Below are positions 1,545-47,923 of a stretch of DNA of 64,000 bases, in pieces. Below the pieces are notes generated by a model. The model worked only from the letters and a program-made list of their open reading frames with translations. It had not been told where the DNA came from and made no database searches. Within the stretch, counting starts at the first letter, position 1, and the number at the start of each line of letters is the position of its first letter. Made by a program: the position numbers and the translations under genes. The stretch comes from Podarcis tiliguerta (lineage: Eukaryota). The DNA lies in assembly GCA_965153285.1 (NCBI GenBank), contig OZ229115.1; one strand, 5' to 3'.

Positions 1545-2962
1545 TAAACAAAGTGAACAAGTCTGGGAAATGGAATGTGATTTTGTAATACTGGTATCTT
1601 TCATATGTGAAAGGGCTGTCCAGTTATAAATATGGTGCCAAAGAAAAAATCTGATTGGGCTCTAATTAGAAGCTATTGATAACTTTCTGAGTCCAAAATG
1701 GTTCTTATTAATTTTTATCAATACAAGTAAGAAATAGAGCAGAACAGAATTGGAATTTTTTTGGTAGCTTCAAAGATAGCACAAGTTAACTTTTGGAAAT
1801 TTCCAAAAAAATTGCTTTCCACTTTGGGAGGTTTATGGAATGATATCAGCATAGCCATAGCAGGAATGCATATGTTAAAGAATCCATGCCTGAGTTGGCT
1901 TTTTTCTTTTGTACCTTCTTCTTTTGTGTTGTGTATTTTAGATTCTAAGCCTTAGGGCAGGGGCTGTGTTGGATCACTAAACTTTAATTGGAAAAAGCAG
2001 TATGAATAAATAAATAAATAAATAAAGCTTTAGCAAACACTGTCCCAAAGAAGGCCTTTTATTTTCTCAATAACTACAATAACTTTATTTAGTATGTGAA
2101 CACGAAGTGTCCACATGAAATTGCAGGACAATGAACTATACATCTTAGGGAAAGTGCAACATACGCATTAAAGGAACATATAAATTCAACTTTCAGCCAA
2201 ACCCCAAGCATAGAGGACTTCCTTTCCATACTGTGGTATCTGAATCAATATAATACTACCAACATGTGTGGTGCTCATCATTTTTTAAGCCCAGGATACT
2301 CTCAATGAGATTTGTGGTGAGGCATAGGGCAAGGCCTATCAAATAAAATGCCCTGCCCTTCTGCATGCATAAACAGGCTCTCTCACCAAAATCTATGATC
2401 TTCAAAAGTATTTTCTAAAACAACCTCACTAACTTTTTGAGTAATACTTTTTAAAGTATGTATGTTTGATGTTGTCTCAAACAACTGAGGTACATGAGGA
2501 TCTACAACTTGCTACATTATAATCAGGGTGCCATCTGATAGTGAATACTAACAACTTGACAAATGACAATAATCTTCAGAGCATGACAACAGTATTAAAA
2601 CAATCAGCTGATCTAGCAGTTGCTATTAGCTGGTTATGTTAACCTTAAAATATTTAACAGCCTATAAAAACTATATACCAAATTATGCAATATGTAATTT
2701 TGAACGCAATTAATAGCAAAATAAAATATGGGAAAATATTATGCTAAATCATGTGTTGCGTGCAGTAAGTAGTTATTTTAAGTAGCTTACTTAATACGTT
2801 GTTGGAGCACTGTGCAGCTTAGTTTTAAATTCAGAATAAGAATAAGTGTGTGATGGATTTCTACAGTCTACTCATAACCACATATTAGTAGAGTAGAAAT
2901 TCCTATAGAACTATGACATATGACACCCTTGAAACATAGCAGTATAGCCTCACTGTGCGCAT

Positions 2963-4006
2963 CTATTTTTCAGAGAGTTTCTTTTTCAAAGAGGCAGGCA
3001 TCTCAGGTGGTGGGGGCCGGGGTAGCTTGAGATAAACCTTAACTGAGTCATAGATGAACCACTGAAGGGCAGTGAGGGTGCCAATCATTAAGATGCGGGT
3101 AAATAGCCCTTTCCAGATGCCTTTCATACCCAATTTCTTGAGGACGCCTACAGCAGTGCTGCCCTTTTCTTTATTGAGCACAGATATCACAGAATCAGCT
3201 GGGTGTGAGACTACAGCGCAAAAGACTCCAGCAATATATCCACCAACAAATGTGACTCCAAGTTGTTCCATTTTGGTGCACTGATCCCGTGGTTTGGGCA
3301 TGACGTATTTGTAGAGAGCCTCTACAGTTCTTTCAAAGCAGGAAAACTTCATCATGGTGTAAGGGATCTGCCGCATCCAGAGTGGAGCCACCCCCTTGTA
3401 GAAAGCCCACAGCCCTTCTTCAATGTACATCTTGGGAGCTGCCTCCCGCAGAGTGTTGGCAAAGCCATGCTGGGTCTGAATTCGTACCTTGGCAGCTTCC
3501 ATTGGGGACAAAGCAATGTCAGCAAAGAACTCAGCACTGGCTGAAGCAGCGAGGTAAACGCTGGTACGCCACAGATAAGCTTGTTCGGGACCCAACAAAT
3601 CAGAGTAATATATCTTGAAGTACTCGTAGAGGCCAAACTTGGCAAGTCCTTGCATGGAGTAGCCTATGGCTGTTGGAGCCCACCCCTTGACCAGACCACG
3701 CATTCCCTCCTCTTGCACAGTGAGACTAAGCCCCTGAAAAAGTCCCCGATAGCGCGTAGGTTCCACTTGCATGCGGCACTTCACCACATCCAGCGGGCAT
3801 ACTGCTGTATGGGTTGCGCCACAGCTCACCACGCCACCCAGGGAGCATAGTATGAGGTAAGTCGTTGACCCATACTCACAGCTATACTCTTCCTCTGGTG
3901 GAGGTGGAGGAGGGGCCGCTTTTTTGGTTGCAGCTGCTGCTGACAGGCAGCGCCGATGTTTGCACACAGAGAGTGGACTGCTGTTCAGGGAGGCCACTGC
4001 ATCCAT
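2963..4006 (-). CDS. Intronless SLC25A3-like mitochondrial phosphate carrier (retrogene), 347 aa from the ATG at 4006; the frame stays open upstream to an ATG at 4324
   Basis: Single uninterrupted ORF with phosphate-carrier motifs: YSCEYGS, THTAVCPLDVVKCRMQ, KGWAPTAIGYSMQGLAKFGLYE, LSPMEAAKVRIQ, RQIPYTMMKF, SHPADSVISVLN, LQWFIYDSVKV and PRPPPPEMP. The ATG at 4006 has a strong Kozak context (GGCCATGG) and is followed by a basic, Ser/Ala-rich leader resembling a mitochondrial presequence. The parental SLC25A3 has multiple exons. Confidence 0.93.
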   Translation of the reverse strand: MDAVASLNSSPLSVCKHRRCLSAAAATKKAAPPPPPPEEEYSCEYGSTTYLILCSLGGVVSCGATHTAVCPLDVVKCRMQVEPTRYRGLFQGLSLTVQEEGMRGLVKGWAPTAIGYSMQGLAKFGLYEYFKIYYSDLLGPEQAYLWRTSVYLAASASAEFFADIALSPMEAAKVRIQTQHGFANTLREAAPKMYIEEGLWAFYKGVAPLWMRQIPYTMMKFSCFERTVEALYKYVMPKPRDQCTKMEQLGVTFVGGYIAGVFCAVVSHPADSVISVLNKEKGSTAVGVLKKLGMKGIWKGLFTRILMIGTLTALQWFIYDSVKVYLKLPRPPPPEMPASLKKKLSEK

Positions 4007-7000
4007 GGCCCTGTAGCCGCCTGAGGCCTTGTACAAAAGTGGGGGTGGAGGGCTGCCTCTGCTGTTTCCCTTAGAGCTCCAGGAAGCGGGGCAAGCAACT
4101 GTCCAGAGTCGAGACCAGAGCTTGGGTTGGGGGTAAGTGCAAGACCTAGAGGCCTCCATTTCCTCCAGGTCCCTGATGGATCTGCTGTTGACACCCGTTC
4201 TCCAGGAAGTATAGGCAGCTGCACTCCACAGCCAAGGTATGTTCTGGGAGGTGGTGAACCTGGTGCTGCTAGTCTCCTCCTTCCAGGATCTGCATTTTCC
4301 CTGGTCTGCAGAAGGACAAGGCATATTCAGCGCAAGGGAGAAGGGCCAGGAGCAGATTAATGGCTACTTTCCCAACTGCCACGAATCCCAGGGTTCTTCT
4401 AACCATAGAGACTCAACCTCCAAAGGAAGGATTGGCCCTCCCAGTGGGTGCGGACTGTGCACTGCATACACTCTAGCCTACTCCACGTGGCTTTGCTGAA
4501 AGCCGCAAGGCCTCAGTGGGCCAAAACAGGCCTAGCACTATGGAAGCAGGCTTTTAAATACATAAAAGAGGATGGGCACTGGTTATGTTGCCCTGAGGAT
4601 TAGACTCTCTTTAATAATAAGATTTAACCACAATATAGAAGAGTTTGCTGGAGGTTAAAAGTAACAGGTGTAAAAATACATTTATCTTCCATATTTAAAT
4701 AATCAGAGGCTGGCTGTTCACTCATTCATTTCTTCCTAACACCTTTGGGAGAAATAAGACAACATGGGATTCCCCAAAAGATGTTAAGCCTTAACCTTTA
4801 ACTGCTAAAGGTTTGAGTTTGATGTAAATAAAGTAGACAGTGGTTGTATGTTACTGGCTAACAGATAGCCAGCACGGTCCTAGTGGCTATATGTCACTCA
4901 GCATAAACTAAATGGCACCATGATCTCCTAAGAAGGAGGTGCATGGATACTTAGAAAACAAACATTACTTATTGGATGTGAATTGTGAAAAAAGGTAGCT
5001 TGTTAGTGGAAAATAAAGCTGGGGGAAAGATGGGAAATATAATGGGAGAGAGTTACAGGATAAAAGAGGGATACAGAGAAGTGGGGATTTCAGGATAGTG
5101 TTTTGTGGTAGAATGGATTATCTGAGAAAAGGTTTGCCAGATCTGCATGACCAGTGCTTGTTTTGTAATGGTACTCACTGGTAGAAAGTACCATTGCATC
5201 TTTTTTTTTTGCTGCCTATGGCAGCCATTTTGTATTGTCTTTGATCAAGATTACATAAATAAATAAATGTCTCCTGCCATTAGATTTCTGAGCATCAAGG
5301 TTTAAAATAGTGATCTTTTTAACCTCAATGTATTATTGGGGATTTTAATGTACATAAAGCTAGTTGGATATTTCCATCTCATATTCAGATTAACCCTCCA
5401 GTGTCTGTCCAGGTGTAATCTGTCAGAAACCACATACCAATGATGGGTGGGGCCAGAGACAAAAGTGTATGGGACACCCCTTCTCTTCCCCAGCTCTCTT
5501 TCTGAAACCCACTTTCCCCACACCTACAGGAAATTAGTCTGAGGGTCACATAAAAGTAGGCTGAGGACTGAAGGTTGCCTTCCTGTGCTCTAGGGCTACA
5601 GGGGAGTGGTGCTAAGAATTTTCCACACTGTTGTAAGAATGTATTAGAAGGCTGAAAATACGTTTTGACAAAGATAAAATAGACCTGGCAAAGCTTTCCT
5701 TATTTTCTGGCCAAACCTCTGCTGCTGCCATTGCCACTGCTACTACGGCTGTGGCTTAGAATATTACCTTTCATCGTTCTCTCACTGTCATCTGTTCACT
5801 GTCTTCTTTAAAACAGCACTTTAAATATTTGAGAGCTACTAATATGCCCTCATTCTCCTCTTAATGCAAAGTAACTTGCATAAATGTTTGTTTCTGACTC
5901 TACCTCATATTCATAGTGCTAAATTTAAATTCAAATTTTTTAACTGTAATGAAGGAAACAAAGCTTCAATGTGCTCTCAGGCAGGGATTTATTGTGGGAT
6001 TGATGCTGTTCATGCATACAAGTTTTTTGCAGCACCCACACAACATCATTGGCATAAAAATGACAACCTGTATTTCCCCCTATTTAATGTGGCTTTACAC
6101 TTTCCATGGAATTTTCAGTAAGTTAAAGAATACCTCTTGTCCATTTGCTTTCTGTAAATGACCCATTTGTAATAAGGTGCTATCTGGAAGCACCATTAAG
6201 TTTAATGTTTTCAAGGATAAATGATGAGCATATTAGTTGTCCCCACTACATGCAAAAGGAGAATGCTAGGCAACTAACTACAGTATGTGGCTGTTTCATT
6301 TCCTCATGTTATTGTGTTTTGCAAGCAAACTGCAGCTTCACAAAAATGGCCAAGAGGGACAATGTCAGGGCCTGAGAGAAGGTCTGCTTTTAAAGCAGAT
6401 TGCTTGTCCTGCTGTGAAGTAGCAAAAAGCTAGAGAGGGCAGTGCCTGGAGGAGGCACTGCTGTGTAGGTCAAGTTCTTCGACAGCAGAACCCTCTAGCA
6501 GAAGTTGACCTTTCGGCAACTGTTGGACACAATAGCTCCTAAGCAGTTTCTGAAAGGACTTCTGAAAGTATCTATTTTCACAAAATTAGAGTTGTGGACA
6601 ATGAACCAGCTTCGTGATCCACATCGTCGTCTTTTTCCTGGAGTGGTGGTATGATTTAAAGCCGGTACGTGTTCCCAGGTCTGTTTCCTTCACAATAGAA
6701 AGTCCTGGATTCTTGTACATTTCAGAAGGTTAGCGGCACCCATATTTAACAATATAAATTATGAAAAGAACACAGGCACTTCAAAGCTTAGCTGAGTAAA
6801 CAGTACATGAAGTTTTGTAGATATCAGGGAGTTTCTGAAGCTGCACTTGGCCATTTTCTCTAAGCCAGCCTTTTTGGACCTGGATATTTGGCTAATGGAC
6901 ATTTTTTTAAAAAATAGATCCAGTTTTTATAGGTTTTTATTTTCACTAAAATTCTGTTTCTGTTAGTTCTTGCTTGTTCCATTGGGAGGCTCAGACTTCA

Positions 7001-8501
7001 CTATTAACCATTGTAAAAAACCCCCTCTTTTTTTACCTCAACTTTTCCTTTGAGTCCCCAGAAGCCATTTCCTTAATTTTATAAGACTGACAATTTAGAA
7101 AAACTTTTAACCGGTTTGGACTGATTGAAGTTCAGGAAGATGCATTTTAGGGGGTAGCAACACGTATACATGCATTATTGGTAGTTTGGTTAATTATTTT
7201 TATTTGCAGCTCTAACCTTGCTTTCCATTTATAAATTGCAGTTTTATATTTCATTCATGCATTCTTTTTATTCTTATATTTCAGTTACTGCAGAGTTTTT
7301 ATATTTTTGTCACTTATATGCTTTGATTTAATAAATATTTCCAATTAATTTTGTTTTTCAGTATATACATACATAAGAGGGGATCAGCATTACACCCATT
7401 GCCTCTGCCCATGATTTCTATGTGTTAAGTGAAAGTGACCTTTTTGGTTATAATTTATCTGTTTCTGTTTTTAACGTTGTTGTTTTTATATTGATGCATG
7501 ATACTTTTAACTTGTAACTCTGAAATTGCTTGCAATGAAGAAAGGGATATAAATATTTATAACAAATAAATAACAGTGTTAAATTGGCCTCTATGTGTGT
7601 ATAGCTATGACCCTGTGTGAACAGGGTTCCCAATTTATTATCAGACTTTTGCACAATTAAGTACCGTACAGTGTACAGCAATTAGCTTGATGGTTATATA
7701 GCTTGCCTTGTAACATACTGAATATCTTGTGTGGCTGTTTGGAGTTTTTAAAGAAGGCATATTAGTGCCCGTAAATGAGCTATCCATAATTGTCCATGAG
7801 TAAAAGCTGACCAAGGAATCTGGCAGAAATGGGTGGAAAAACAGCTGAAATAATATTTTTGGGTGAAACAATAGTTTATGGTTGCCCTTCATTTATTTTA
7901 TGAAAACAAGGTGTTGTATAACTAAAGACATACATAAGTTGCTTGTTTCTGTAAATGTATTATATGGAAAACTCATATAATAAAAAGAACAAAGCATTGA
8001 GGGTGCTGTCCCATAACATCTGAGGGGCCACATGTGAAGCTGGCCAGTTTTTAATTAACCAAAAGCCAACACTGGTTTAAGCAGCCCCAGGTAGGGCCAG
8101 CACAAGAATCACTCAGCCATGTGGTTAACCAGTGCCAGTAAAACAACACTATCTCAGTGAATGCTGCCGCTCTCATGTCCGGTTAAAGCTCAAAACTGAG
8201 CAGCCTGCTTCTTAAGAAAAATTATTGCAGGACCACTAGAAGACAGAGTTCCTTATCTTCTGCTAGCAATCGCCTGCAGTCCTTAAACCAAAAGCCCCAC
8301 CTCCTTTCTGACAGAGGGAGAAGAGAGTCAGCAAGCTTAGAACACTTGATTTTAAAAAACAAAGGTTTTTGAGGATATGCAATGCCACCCACCCACCTAT
8401 TGCTCTGTTGAAGTCTTCTACAGGAGTTCTACTGGGGGCTGGCCAATTGTTTCTTTTCTTTTTGGAGCCGAACTCCTCCCCTTCTGCAGGCCCAGGCTTA
8501 C

Positions 8502-8518: not shown

Positions 8519-8591
8519 TTCTCTGCAGCCTCTTAAGAGCAGATTCAGACCTGCTGCCTTGGTGTGGTGGGGCTGCAGACGGTTGCCTGCC

Positions 8592-9024
8592 ATGGAGTCG
8601 CAAGATGCAGCTGCTCAGTCTCTCCGGGCCCCCAAATGCTCACGCTGCCGGAACCACGGCTTTGTGGTACCCGTGAAGGGCCACGCAGGCCACTGCCGCT
8701 GGAAGCAGTGCCCATGTGAAAAATGTGCTCTCATTACTGAACGCCAGAAGATCATGGCTGCACAGAAGGCCTTGAAGAGGCAGGGACCGGACTCCCCGCT
8801 CAGGGAAATGTTGCCACCTGGTCAGCACAGTCCCAGCGATGAACAGGTGGCAACCACAGGTAGCGGCAGAAAGTGCTCCAGGCTGAATCTTTCAGAACCC
8901 CACACCCAGGGGTCTGTTGTGCAGGAAGGAGCCAAGGGGACTTCTGCAGCAGTTAGCCACTCTATGAGGACAAGGACTGCCAGGACACCACCCAAAGCCA
9001 GCTCTCCAACCTTCATAGACTTAG
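8592..9024 (+). CDS. DMRTB1: DMRTB1 (DMRT6) coding exon 1, containing the DM domain
   Basis: Start context [58 protein letters not shown] carries the DMRTB1-type signatures VPVKGHAG and QKIMAAQK. Donor TTAG|GTATGT at 9024/9025, phase 1. Confidence 0.95.
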
Positions 9025-9105
9025 GTATGTGGCCCAGCTCAAAGCTCTGCTTCAAACAGGCGGATGTGTTCATAGCCATTATTTTAATGTATTTTTAATC
9101 TTTGT

Positions 9106-19829: not shown

Positions 19830-20560
19830 AAGTGGAGAACTGACGTCAAAGATCAAGGCTGGGCCGGGCTGAGCCTTCATCAGAAAGGTGCTACTAATAC
19901 GCAGGACAGAAGAAGATACGGCTGTAGAGAGCCGACGGGAAGCAGCCGCAAACTCGGCCAGAGGGCGCTACAGTCCCAACAAGTTGCAAATGCGACGAGG
20001 CTTTGCTGCCGTCTAGCAAAGTGAAGCCCAACCTGTGCAGGTGCCTTCAGGCCCACCAAAAAAAAGTAGCTACAGTTTCAGAAGGCCTGAGACAGCGAGC
20101 AAGAGTTCCGTCATGTTGCCCTTGCCCTCCAAGCGGCAGCGAAAAGCTAATTCTGCCCGCCCCGTCAACTCTTCAGAGCGCCCCGGTCATGAGGGCAAGG
20201 GCGAGGGCGGCTGCGGCGCTTTCGGCACCGGCTCGCGGCGCCTGCTGAGCCAGCGACTGCCCAAGTGCGCGCGCTGCAGGAACCACGGCGTGGTGTCCAG
20301 CCTCAAGGGCCACAAGCGGCTGTGCCGCTGGCGGGAGTGCGCGTGCGCCGCCTGCTTGCTGGTGCTCGAGAGGCAGCGCGTGACGGCCGCGCAGGTGGCG
20401 CTGAGGAGGCACCAAGACCAGGTGGCTGGCCAGGTGAGTGGGCGCGCGCGCCTTGCGCGGGGGAAAAACCCAGCAGGGGCGGGAAACACAACGCTGGCGG
20501 CAGAAGAGGGCCAGCAGGGCTCCTCCTCGGGCCCCTCTCTCCTTGCTGACGGCTCTGGAG
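19830..20560 (+). promoter_or_regulatory. CpG island / promoter of DMRT2B, with a palindromic CRE (TGACGTCA, 19841-19848)
   Basis: Most CpG-dense stretch of the window; it covers the 5' region and the DM exon. Confidence 0.75.
20113..20433 (+). CDS. DMRT2B: DMRT2-family gene (DMRT2B) coding exon 1, containing the DM domain
   Basis: [52 protein letters not shown] is a DMRT2-type DM domain with all zinc ligands intact. First in-frame ATG is at 20113, with an upstream in-frame stop at 20014. Donor CAG|GTGAGT, phase 0. Confidence 0.9.
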
Positions 20561-20619
20561 TCCTTAAGAGGCCATAAAACAATAATAATAATAAAGGTGA
20601 GGATGATGGTGACAGTTAA

Positions 20620-20690
20620 TAATAATTTTATTGTTTATACCCCGCCCATCTGGCTGGGTTTCCCCAGCCGCTCTGGGCGGCTTCCAACAA
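20620..20690 (-). mobile_element. L2 3' terminal fragment in DMRT2B intron 1
   Basis: TATACCCCGCCCATCTGGCTGGGTTTCCCCAGCCGCTCTGGGCGGCTTCC is the reverse complement of the L2 tail. Confidence 0.8.
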
Positions 20691-21269
20691 AATATAAAAA
20701 TAATAATAAACTGTCAGACATTTAAAACTTACCTGAACAACTTGCTTCAGCACTGAGTTGTATTAATTTCGGTGGTGGAGCAGCAGAACGGTGAGTAATG
20801 GCTAAAGAAATCCTCTCAGGCGGCGGTGGCGGGTGGGGGAATGGCGGAAACGCCTCAGGGCATGTGATGTGGGGGCCCCTCAGAGGGCCACACTTGCCAG
20901 TATAGGCAACTATGGCAAGTTGAATAGTCGCTGTTTAAACCAAGAACGTACTAGTCCCTGTATAAGCAGGATCCCCGCCCCAGAGGCATACCCCCCAGCT
21001 TGCCTTTATTCGTTGCAATGCAGGAGCATCTTCAGCTGTGAAGTTTTCCCCCCTGTATCAAAGCACAAAGCTTCAGCTGCTGAATTTGCTCCTGTAAGTT
21101 CAGCTGGCTTTCGTTTTAGCTTCATTGGTGGGTGCTCTGGGCAGTGGGGTGGGCTTTTTGCTTAGCTTCTGGGCCTATGCAAGCTTTATAGGGCAGTAAG
21201 CTTTTCCAGAACAAAAAATAAAGCATCTGCATCAGGAAGACCTTTCTGGTGGTAAGTGGTGTTTGACAT

Positions 21270-21437
21270 TGGAATGGACTCCTTGGGAAGGTGGTGGACT
21301 CCTCTCCTTTGGAAGTTTCGAGGCAGAGGTTGGATGGTCAACTGTCATGGATGCTTTGTTTGCAATTCCTGCATTGCATGGGTTTGGACTAGATGACCCT
21401 TGAGGTCCCTTCCAACTCTACGGTTCTATGATTCTAA
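21270..21437 (+). mobile_element. CR1 3' end fragment
   Basis: GGACTAGATGACCCTTGAGGTCCCTTCCAACTCTACGGTTCTATGATTCTA is the canonical CR1 terminus. A more degraded copy lies at about 60020-60160. Confidence 0.8.
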
Positions 21438-21983
21438 GTGACACAAGAACAAACAGGGGGAGGATGTGGAGCTGAGGAATAATGTAAAGAAAGTAACCTT
21501 AAAACTGCCCTCTCCTGAAGCACCTTTTCCTGAGAAAGTCACTGGAATCTGGTTCTGCGTTTCAGCTAAAAACAAGTCCCAGTCTTTAGTGAGCTTTGCC
21601 TCATGTAGATCGAAGTTGAGTAACTTTAACTTTTAAATGGGATGGATTCAGTGTAAATAGTTTAAGCTTCTTAAATTACCGTAATTTGGGTGCTGGTGGA
21701 GCTGTCTGGGCCTGGCGCTGTAATTGGTTTACTGCTATTGAAGACAAGTTCCCTTTCTTTGAGCTCATGTTATATGTTGTATGTATTTAAAACAGCAATA
21801 ATAAACCCCAATGTAAACTATATAATTGTAATGCATCCTGGAGGAAAGTTGCAACTTTTCTTATTTGCTTCCAAATAGCTTGAATGTTTTCAGTATTATC
21901 TTAGCACGCAAGCATGGACATTGTTAGTAAGCAAAAATAGCTATGGTGTTGCTGAATGTCCTCTTCTTTTTGTCATTGCATAG

Positions 21984-22092
21984 GTTAAGAAAGGAATGAG
22001 GAGCAGTGAATATTCAGTTTCTGGCCACAGATTAAACTTCCATTGCAAGACCAAGCAGACTGCCAGATTGTTGGCTAGACACTCACAGGAAG
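21984..22092 (+). CDS. DMRT2B: DMRT2B coding exon 2 (not in the ORF track)
   Basis: Acceptor ttttgtcattgcatag|GTT. VKKGMRSSEYSVSGHRLNFHCKTKQTARLLARHSQE resembles the short middle DMRT2 exon (xKKG...LLAKS.LE). Donor GAAG|GTATGT. Phases 0 and 1 bridge exons 1 and 3 exactly. Confidence 0.85.
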
Positions 22093-22797
22093 GTATGTGC
22101 CGGCATGTAGGAAATACACTTGAAGCAAATCTAGTAGGTTCTCCCTTTTAATGTATTCCATTATAAAATGTGGTATTGATATAGGACAATAAGTTGTTAT
22201 AGCTGTGAAATGAATGTTTATTTTATATTCCTGACACATTCCATAAATAAGTATCTGCTTATGAAGACCTCTTTAGGCATGACTCTCCAAACCCTTAAAA
22301 AACATCAAAAGATTGTGTAACAATGGCATTTCTAGTCAAGGACTCTGGTTGACATTACATTTCATGAGTGAATACTGGATGCCTTCCAGAGAAGCTAAGT
22401 ATACCTAAGTGCCACTGATTTGAGTATGAACTGAGTGTTCTTGATTTTATTGGTGTCAGTTGTATTTAAGCACAAAGGCTGCTTCAGATGTCTTAATTAC
22501 ATATGATATTACCTACACATGAAATACACTGGTGTAGTTAGCTGTTAGCTGTTGTATGTGACAAGCATATGGGTGCACTTTCACTATGCTACACTTTCAA
22601 CTATACAACGTGTACAAACAGTTAATGACTGGCACATGCAACTGTTACCTGTGATGTGACAACTTACACACAGGTTTCTTAATAATACCGTTTTTACCGC
22701 GTGAAATGCTTTCTGTAAAGGAAATGCGTAATGTTTGAAAGCACCTAATGCCAGGCTTTGCACAATAACTGTCCTTTTCCTTTGGATCTTGTTGTAG

Positions 22798-46199: not shown

Positions 46200-47145
46200 C
46201 CATATTTGAGGACTGGAAAATGGCCTCATGCAACACATTTTTTAAAAAAGAGATCTGGGGATGGGGGGAGGCAGTCCTGGAATTTACAGGTGGGTTAACT
46301 TAACGTCTGTCCCAGAAAAATGGGAAGTATTGTTAAAGATAATATTACAAACCATATAGAAGAACAAGCCTTGCTGTAGCAGAACCAGGATGACTTATGC
46401 AAGGTTAAGGTCTATTTCATTACCCTACTGGAGTTCTTTGAGAGTGTCAACAAGCCTATAGATAGAGGTCATCTGGTTAACATAATGTATTTGGATTTTC
46501 CAAAAGCTTTCACCAAAGTACCTTTCCAAAGACTCTAGAAACTGGTTACATAACAGGAAGCAGAAAGTAGGAATAAATGGACAGTTCTCCTGATGGAGTG
46601 ATGTAGAAAGTGGTATTGGTATTGGGATCTGTGCTTTTGAACTTGTTCAGAAATGATCTAGAGTTGGAGTGAGCAGTGAGGCAGCCAAGTCTGCTAATGA
46701 TACTAAATTGTTCAGGGGCATTAAAACAAAAAGGGATTGTGTAAAGCTCCAAAACAACCTCTCCAAATTGAGTGAATGGGATTAAAATGACAAATGAAAT
46801 TCAGTATTACAAGTGTAAAGCAATGCATGTTAGGACAAAAATTAAAAATTTTGCATATGCATTCATGGAGTCTGAATTCACAATGCCTGACCAGGAATGA
46901 GACCTTGAAGTCATAGGGAATAACACAATGAGCCTATCAACCCAGGGTTCCATTAGCTTAGAAGAAGGCAAATTCCATGTTGGGATCATTAGGAAAGAAA
47001 TTCAAAATAAAACTGCCAATATCATAATGTCAGTATATGAATCTGTTGTGCAACCGCATTTGGAATACAGCATACAGTTCTGGTTGCCTCATTTCAAAAG
47101 GGACACGGTAGAGTTGGAAAAGTTTCAGAAAAGGGCAAGCAAATT
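46200..47145 (+). mobile_element. Degraded CR1 reverse-transcriptase fragment in the last GLIS1 intron
   Basis: LEFFESVNK..DRG..MYLDFPKAF and YESVVQPHLEYSIQFWLPHFKRDTVELEKFQKRA, with stops and deletions. Confidence 0.88.
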
Positions 47146-47923
47146 AAGAGAATCTTGGGGGGGGGGGGGCTTTAAGCATGCCAGCAGGAGTTTGCTAAAG
47201 CTATGTATGTTTTACAGCTTCGTTTTTACATCTTTGATTATTTATTTATTTATTTTAAAAATTGCATTAAAAATTATTGGCTGGCACCTCAGAGACTGCA
47301 TGTGTATAAGCAATTTGAAGTTATGAAAATAACCTTTTAAAAATACCTTTTTCTAATATTTGGGTAACATTTTATAAACTCAAAATTTCCACAGCCATGC
47401 TACAATTTTGTGAACTTAAATACAGAAATAAAAACAGTTGTCTCAGTATTAAAGGATATGATAAATCTGCAAATATTTTTTTATATCTATGAAACAGAAA
47501 CCTTTAGCTGCAATGTTAGCTGATCAAGCTGTAGAACTAGATCTAATCTAGACATTAAATGAAACATGTAGTCACTGCCAATCAACAATTCTCCTGCATG
47601 CCTTCAAGTAATTTTTAACTGAAACAGGCATGTGATGTTAATACAGTATTGTTGTGCCATGTGTCTGATTCAACTAGATAATACAGGGAGACATGGGGAT
47701 GGATAAGAGCCACACATTTCCTGTAACACTTGACTCAGAGACTGAATTCTAGCTGTGCAGCTTCAGATAATTCAGTCTCTGAAAGAAGAGAATTAGGGGA
47801 CCTTAACACATACAAAAAAGCAGCATCCCACTTTCCTTATTTATAAAATATAAAAAAGATGTTTGCTTTCCCCCTATAAAAATTACTGAGCAAGATTAAT
47901 CCAGTACAGCCCAGATCAGTTAC

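Follow-up and report, generated by a model that had tools for sequence, protein, structure and literature searches.

SLC25A3 is regarded as the sole dedicated phosphate importer of vertebrate mitochondria, and it is also a route by which copper reaches cytochrome oxidase. The gene has two mutually exclusive exons, 3A and 3B, and B is the ubiquitous isoform (PMC13252106; papers are cited here from excerpts of their text). Two other mitochondrial energy genes serve as precedents for additional copies: PDHA2 is a testis retrogene (PMC12377818), and ANT4, encoded by SLC25A31, is common to mammals and the anole lizard and has its own intron-exon structure (PMC3155547). In humans, published maps put SLC25A3P1 at 1p32.3 (PMC9434983) and list it as part of a SLC25A3P1/DMRTB1/GLIS1 locus (PMC11641332). 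In this study, we analysed a window of 64,000 nt from contig OZ229115.1 of the lizard Podarcis tiliguerta, which contains a phosphate carrier open reading frame (ORF) without introns. Coordinates refer to this whole stretch, with position 1 as its first letter. We believe that the ORF is very probably a working retrogene, derived from an isoform-B mRNA of SLC25A3, present amniote-wide and still under selection.

The age of the copy was estimated from two maximum-likelihood (ML) trees that included its relatives from other amniotes, which are called 'SLC25A3-like' or 'mitochondrial-like' in databases ('like' proteins below). The first tree contained 58 sequences and 297 columns and was computed under LG+C20 with posterior mean site frequencies (PMSF) and a careful search. 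The second contained 66 sequences and 267 columns; the exon-3 and N-terminal columns were removed, and more mammals and turtles were included. In the first tree, all 33 'like' proteins were united with a support of 98/94 (starred). Mammals received 94/89 within this clade; the starred groups were the possum with nine placentals (99/95), sauropsids (97/97), turtles (100/94), tuatara with squamates (100/96) and squamates (100/99). In the second tree, every support was starred: 99/92 for the 'like' clade, 99/93 for mammals, 100/99 for two marsupials beside 15 placentals at 96/95, 100/98 for sauropsids, and 99/95 for tuatara with squamates. The clade comprises squamates, tuatara, turtles, a crocodile, the ostrich, marsupials and placentals, and its inner topology mirrors the species tree. 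Both trees place it within vertebrate SLC25A3. The lizard copy did not cluster with squamate SLC25A3 in either tree. When squamate 'like' proteins were forced to group with squamate SLC25A3, the cost was 51.4 log-likelihood units in the approximately unbiased (AU) test (p = 0.010), and a squamate-only origin was rejected. Forcing all sauropsid 'like' proteins to group with sauropsid SLC25A3 cost 15.3 units (p = 0.019). The synapsid-sauropsid split is about 320 million years old. The starred clade and the AU tests bear out the proposal of the initial annotation, made from the sequence alone, that the retroposition predates the separation of mammals and reptiles.

SLC25A3 is highly expressed and often retrocopied, and squamates (or sauropsids) and mammals could have acquired independent retrocopies whose fast evolution clusters them artificially. 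Both 'like' groups are long-branched, with stems of 0.14-0.22, and the strictly shared derived residues outside exon 3, common to all three 'like' groups, are two (232 F>L and 356 V>G). However, the clade was starred in both data sets, each analysed with a site-heterogeneous model, both separate-origin trees were rejected by the AU test, and the topology within the clade follows the species tree. In addition, the lizard gene and, by the published map, human SLC25A3P1 both adjoin DMRTB1, which two insertions would hardly reproduce. We give independent retrocopies a slim chance.

A single ancient retroposition also agrees with the structure of the copy. The parent SLC25A3 is divided into exons. 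The lizard ORF has no introns, and the RNA-like contigs described below have no joints. The copy has a single exon-3 region. When scored at 10 diagnostic columns, this region was closer to B than to A in 32 of the 33 'like' sequences, with one tie; the B:A score was clearest in slowly evolving members (7:1 in tuatara, 6:1 or 6:2 in turtle, possum and geckos) and weak (3:2) in the lizard ORF itself. Evidence for an unlinked locus came from two squamates: the 'like' gene and the parent lie on contigs of 158,443,526 and 136,227,758 bases in Rhineura, and of 15,080,962 and 4,955,999 bases in Lerista. An intronless copy with one version of exon 3, unlinked to its parent, is what is predicted for a processed mRNA. 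As first annotated, no poly(A) tail or target-site duplication could be recognised. There was no poly(A) remnant beside the gene (the sole A-run of at least 8 lies at 1414-1423, beyond the mRNA end), and a search for target-site duplications yielded short imperfect two-copy families, none convincing. Since such marks are expected to be absent after about 300 million years, this was not counted against a retro-origin. Assembly or cDNA contamination was ruled out as a source, because the copy is diverged, has genomic flanks and is present in many assemblies.

A different origin, as an old paralogue that arose at the DNA level (for example, as the partner of SLC25A3 from a vertebrate whole-genome duplication) and lost its introns afterwards, could also be proposed from the unsettled attachment point of the clade and from the missing poly(A) tail and target-site duplication. 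But no amphibian or fish 'like' member was found among the best 120 matches of either search, although absence is not thereby proven, and a second Ranitomeya protein grouped with the parent SLC25A3 in the second tree. The clade nests among tetrapod and sarcopterygian parents and not outside gnathostomes. All introns are gone and exon 3 is of the B type only, as a processed mRNA copy predicts. We rate the DNA-level origin as slightly less probable still than independent retrocopies.

The interval first annotated, 2963-4006, corresponds to the last 347 codons, counted from an internal Met, of a single stop-free ORF of 453 codons on the minus strand, which opens with an ATG at 4324 and closes with a stop at 2963. 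The 453-aa form agrees with the NCBI model of Podarcis raffonei (455 aa, 99% identity), which was the best match in the protein search and is annotated 'phosphate carrier protein, mitochondrial-like'. The description of an intronless, stop-free phosphate carrier ORF was upheld by the continuous frame and by RNA-like contigs that are colinear with zero joints. The stop at 2963 was retained; the coding region is probably 2963-4324 rather than 2963-4006. The features of the gene are as follows.

2040-2962, minus strand: 3' untranslated region (UTR); two RNA-like contigs reach 357-363 nt past position 2401
2063-2058 and 2089-2084, minus strand: poly(A) signals AATAAA; the mRNA ends at about 2038-2044, just beyond the 2063-2058 signal
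2963-2965, minus strand: stop codon
2966-3883, minus strand: carrier body, codons 148-453, with three Mito_carr repeats and a predicted six-helix fold (Pfam, AlphaFold, Foldseek; seven synonymous and no nonsynonymous differences)
3884-4006, minus strand: codons 107-147, the counterpart of the parent presequence in alignments, with the 'LSAA' block
4006, minus strand: internal Met (agggccATGg; Kozak context examined)
4007-4324, minus strand: N-terminal extension, codons 1-106, alignable in frame across squamates and predicted to be disordered
4324 and 4159, minus strand: first ATG and second Met, within the N-terminal extension
4325-4497, minus strand: 5' UTR and transcription-start zone; RNA-like contig ends at 4341, 4344 and 4497

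The ORF contains three matches to Pfam Mito_carr (PF00153; E 3.6e-47, 158.5 bits against a cut-off of 22.3). The SLC25 signature on odd helices is P-x-[DE]-x-x-[KR]. PLDVVKCR and PMEAAKVR in the ORF agree with it, and the third repeat reads PADSVIS in the lizard versus PADSVVS in the parent. In an AlphaFold model built from a 37-row alignment, the predicted local distance difference test (pLDDT) was 72-92 by block from residue 151, 57 for block 141-150, and below 50 for residues 1-68 and 77-145. The best Foldseek matches of the model were UCP1 (8hbv/8g8w) and ADP/ATP carriers, with target-normalised template modelling (TM) scores of 0.63-0.77 and a probability of 1.00; the same two kinds of carrier are the nearest solved chains by sequence, phosphate carriers being without a solved structure. 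All functionally named matches among the best 120 were SLC25A3 or phosphate carrier, and the parent SLC25A3 of squamates was 74-78% identical to the lizard ORF. In 25 parent sequences from Ciona to mammals, 190 columns were invariant; the lizard ORF retains 174 of them, and 133 are unchanged in all 33 'like' sequences. H76 and L175 of SLC25A3 are reported to be needed for transport (PMC13252106, a preprint). The lizard ORF retains the His of THT and the Leu of ADIAL-PME, which match these two residues within one position of numbering. Judged from sequence and model, the product is predicted to be a six-helix carrier that keeps nearly all SLC25A3-invariant residues, and the initial description of a copy diverged from SLC25A3 with its carrier motifs kept was correct.

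Selection was tested with the listed differences from the main contig of the closest relative (36 of 37 listed); the incomplete lists of two other organisms were excluded. In the carrier body (codon 148 on), seven of seven differences were synonymous. The chance of this result is about 4e-5, given about 24% synonymous sites. Both changes in codons 107-147 were nonsynonymous, as were 10 of the 12 in the extension (codons 1-106). The divergence was 0.86% in codons 107-453 (9/1044 nt), 2.8% in the 3' UTR (16/562 nt) and 4.4% in 4007-4258 (11/252 nt). Three indels of 6, 3 and 6 nt, all multiples of three, were listed within the ORF, and indels of 1, 3, 4, 4, 9, 6 and 8 nt in the 3' UTR. These data show that purifying selection acts on the carrier body.

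Four runs of a close relative, guessed to be RNA, contain 20-23% of the sampled words of 2401-8400. With runs from three related organisms, the gene was covered by a single long contig in each case (2046, 2316 and 2418 nt), and the fourth RNA-like run gave four pieces. From 2401 to 4258, 4344 or 4497, the contigs follow the genome colinearly without joints, and they stop about 15-25 nt beyond an AATAAA. Contig depth was 135 and 87 on the gene versus about 3 on scattered intergenic pieces, a ratio of about 30-40. An unspliced, polyadenylated mRNA of about 2.3-2.4 kb would give this pattern. With transcription and the synonymous differences of the carrier body taken together, the claim that the lizard copy remains under selection was supported. 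No CpG island was found at the 5' zone. The short contigs with a depth of about 3 were scattered over 4598-7886, between the carrier gene and DMRTB1, and could be background, unspliced RNA or DNA carry-over.

A transcribed relic without function, whose ORF is open by chance or through recent history and whose RNA is promoter noise from the DMRTB1 region, would account for an N-terminal third that evolves as if neutral against the close relative, for the lack of a CpG island or known promoter at the gene, and for a human counterpart annotated as a pseudogene (PMC10070997). But such a relic would not be expected to carry only synonymous changes in the carrier body, at a divergence below that of the 3' UTR, or to retain the parent-invariant columns counted above. 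The RNA-like contigs also stop at one definite place, by a poly(A) signal, and far exceed the flanks in depth. In addition, the lizard protein is 80-92% identical to its squamate orthologues (worm lizard, anguid, iguanians, skink, cordylid, monitor, geckos and snakes), and 80-86% identical to those of the other squamate families. We consider a functionless relic highly improbable, about as much so as the DNA-level paralogue.

The N-terminal extension had no match in Pfam or Atlas. It was 37-54% identical to 13 longer squamate sequences, and 11 of 30 positions were identical in one short fragment. In the region before the carrier body, the 15 squamate sequences had gaps in whole residues only; the LSAA block was invariant in all 15, and the block LWS-LW--CP-SWSS was conserved, including in geckos. 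The internal Met at 4006 is Val in Rhineura and Gekko japonicus, so their translation must begin upstream or at a non-AUG codon. The mammalian 'like' models start at the equivalent of the lizard internal Met, without the long extension. The turtle model (P0026, Lepidochelys) begins MAQPPGDPEGCR, compared with MPCPSADQGKCR at 4289-4324 in the lizard. If this likeness is real, both the long extension and its start codon could be older than the divergence of turtles and lizards. The extension looks unconstrained in the close comparison, so translation may begin at the ATG at 4324, 4159 or 4006.

Intact mammalian models of about 330-337 aa were found in elephant, tenrec and armadillo; pteropodid, phyllostomid and vespertilionid bats; felids, hyaena, bears, panda and mustelids; horse, bovids and cervids; squirrels, marmots, kangaroo rat, mole, hedgehog and shrew; and capuchin and two marsupials. 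The slow loris model is shorter (286 aa). Turtles have a cluster of 'like' proteins with 28 members. The cattle protein is recorded in RefSeq as 'uncharacterized protein LOC616319' (NP_001094724.1, UniProt A6QQ54). No 'like' member from catarrhines (Old World monkeys and apes), muroids (mouse and rat) or neognath birds was among the matches listed. This suggests lineage-specific losses (mouse/rat, Old World monkeys, apes), which would explain why the gene was overlooked. The ostrich was the sole bird in the 'like' clade among the matches listed, even though these included SLC25A3 and DMRTB1 from many neognaths; the retrogene may have been lost in Neognathae, or gene models may merely be absent.

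Literature searches found no paper describing an SLC25A3-derived retrogene. 'SLC25A3-like' and DMRTB1 with 'phosphate carrier' had no matches, and 'phosphate carrier protein mitochondrial-like' led only to red-clover honey proteins and Amaranthus. SLC25A3 with retrogene, retrocopy or pseudogene gave nothing relevant by titles and abstract openings; an apparent SLC25A3 mention in the excerpt of PMC3155547 was SLC25A31. SLC25A3P1 is cited in tables of genome-wide association, methylation or expression studies, and no study of the gene itself was apparent in these excerpts. The bovine LOC616319 is mentioned in one paper. The claim of an uncharacterised extra carrier stands in that no describing paper was found, and it falls short in that annotation pipelines have already named the protein in many species. 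The gene is publicly annotated under generic names but apparently unstudied.

The carrier gene lies beside DMRTB1. The plus-strand ORF 8559-9098 (Met 8592) matched Pfam DM (E 4.6e-22), and all named matches listed for it were DMRTB1; this homologue search superseded the generic DM-domain identity given by the Atlas search.

8592-8765, plus strand: DMRTB1 exon 1, start codon through DM domain (Pfam DM; 99% to P. lilfordi DMRTB1)

The DMRTB1 start codon is 4.2 kb from the carrier ATG in head-to-head orientation, which confirms the reported minus-strand position just 5' of DMRTB1. GLIS1-type C2H2 zinc fingers were not found within the 64-kb window. The 'like' gene and DMRTB1 were on a longest contig of the same size in P. 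lilfordi, Rhineura, Elgaria, Lerista (15 Mb), Sceloporus, Varanus (20.6 Mb), Caretta and Mauremys reevesii, which places them on the same chromosome or scaffold and does not speak to adjacency. No mammal had both a 'like' protein and DMRTB1 in the listed matches.

For the human locus at 1p32.3, the initial annotation gives the order LRP8, SLC25A3P1 (minus strand), DMRTB1 (plus strand) and GLIS1 (minus strand). SLC25A3P1 is in chromatin contact with a single-nucleotide polymorphism in a GLIS1 intron (PMC7904932). It was listed, with PRAME and CTCFL, among nine genes strongly over-expressed in ovarian cancer versus healthy tissue, and was set aside as 'assumed not to be translated' (PMC10070997). 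The proposed link with the human pseudogene is one of map position: the lizard gene adjoins DMRTB1, and SLC25A3P1 is mapped with DMRTB1/GLIS1. By map position, SLC25A3P1 would be a decayed orthologue of the lizard gene.

Three other features were observed in the window. A second DM-domain gene lies downstream of DMRTB1 at 20035-23540 on the plus strand (Pfam DM, E 7.9e-22, on ORF 20035-20577). ORF 46928-47326 (plus strand) has a tail like the reverse transcriptase of a long interspersed nuclear element (LINE) (…PHLEYSIQFW…), and ORF 33133-33198 (minus strand) has the zinc-knuckle end CPHCGRTCGSRMGLHSHLWTHC; both are typical of LINE ORF2 remnants.

Several points weigh against an ancient working retrogene. 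The attachment of the 'like' clade to the parent tree is unsettled: it stood beside mammalian SLC25A3 with weak support (84/80) in the first tree and in a polytomy in the second. Long-branch attraction between the mammalian and sauropsid 'like' groups may add to their union, the AU p-values (0.01-0.02) are moderate, and shared derived residues are few. Since protein databases list intact models only, they hide any broken copies and bias the number of intact orthologues counted. Two genes on one contig as large as a chromosome are weak evidence of synteny. In Lerista edwardsae, the locus tags of the 'like' gene (011656, P0007) and a DMRTB1-like gene (011631, P0146) are 25 apart; the numbering may not be positional, or the genes may be further apart than in Podarcis. 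The runs are guessed to be RNA, and their contigs give neither strand, level nor tissue. The extension appears unconstrained against the close relative (10 nonsynonymous and 2 synonymous differences, ratio about 1.5). Finally, several SLC25A3-invariant positions are altered across the clade, for example 246 E>P (sauropsids), 219 F>A/C, 228 C>G/A/F and 286 P>H/E/Q/R. These clade-wide substitutions leave room for altered kinetics or specificity.

With these points considered, we still favour the retrogene, and its history probably ran as follows. A spliced SLC25A3 mRNA with exon 3B was reverse-transcribed and inserted beside DMRTB1 in an ancestor of all amniotes, before the synapsid-sauropsid split. 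Purifying selection has since kept the copy in squamates, tuatara, turtles and crocodilians, in at least one palaeognath bird, and in marsupials and many placentals. The Podarcis copy is transcribed as an unspliced mRNA encoding a predicted six-helix carrier of the inner membrane. Its product may import phosphate, and possibly copper, into mitochondria. The N-terminal region, which is long, disordered and quick to evolve, would serve as a lengthened presequence with its cleavage site at the conserved R-x-L-S-A-A. Expression may be restricted to certain tissues. The germ line is our leading guess because of the DMRTB1 neighbourhood, the precedents of ANT4 and PDHA2, and the reported over-expression of SLC25A3P1 in ovarian cancer.

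The standard human SLC25 list holds 53 carriers. A bolder proposal, which we make tentatively and find doubtful when taken whole, is that the gene is an overlooked extra amniote member of this family: a germ-line-biased phosphate/copper carrier about 320 million years old, with transport shifted in view of the clade-wide substitutions and an unusually long sauropsid N-terminal extension for targeting or regulation, absent from the list only through its decay in the human lineage, and perhaps decayed in muroids and neognaths too. More generally, a second copy older than the mammal-reptile split would mean that many amniotes, such as cattle, cats, horses and bats, have a backup or tissue-specific carrier. 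This would matter for extrapolating from the SLC25A3 phenotypes of mouse and human, as humans seem to have lost the copy and no mouse or rat protein was among the matches listed, and the human 'processed pseudogene' would be recast as a dead gene. Very old retrogenes are few, and this one would be a clear further case. The gene is notable both for its age and for being overlooked, the human copy being annotated as dead.

Among known systems, SLC25A3 isoform B is the closest to the lizard product. They share three Mito_carr repeats, the PLD..KCR and PME..KVR motifs and the LWMRQIPYTMMKF block; the alignment also shows the presequence-end motif R-x-L-(S)-A-A in both, and the exon-3 region of the lizard copy is of the B type. 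In contrast to its parent, the lizard copy is intronless and lies at another locus, adjoining DMRTB1. By branch lengths, the 'like' clade has evolved several-fold faster, and sauropsid 'like' proteins have about 145 aa ahead of the carrier body, compared with about 50 aa in SLC25A3. The mammalian 'SLC25A3-like' models, such as bovine LOC616319, belong to the same starred clade as the lizard gene but do not have its long N-terminal extension. Human SLC25A3P1 is likewise a copy of SLC25A3, mapped in the DMRTB1/GLIS1 neighbourhood; it is annotated as a non-coding processed pseudogene, whereas the lizard copy is intact. PDHA2 and SLC25A31 (ANT4) are extra copies of core mitochondrial energy genes that serve the male germ line, and they are the model for our germ-line guess. 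PDHA2 makes up for a parent gene on the X chromosome, whereas human SLC25A3 is autosomal. SLC25A31 differs in having an intron-exon structure of its own.

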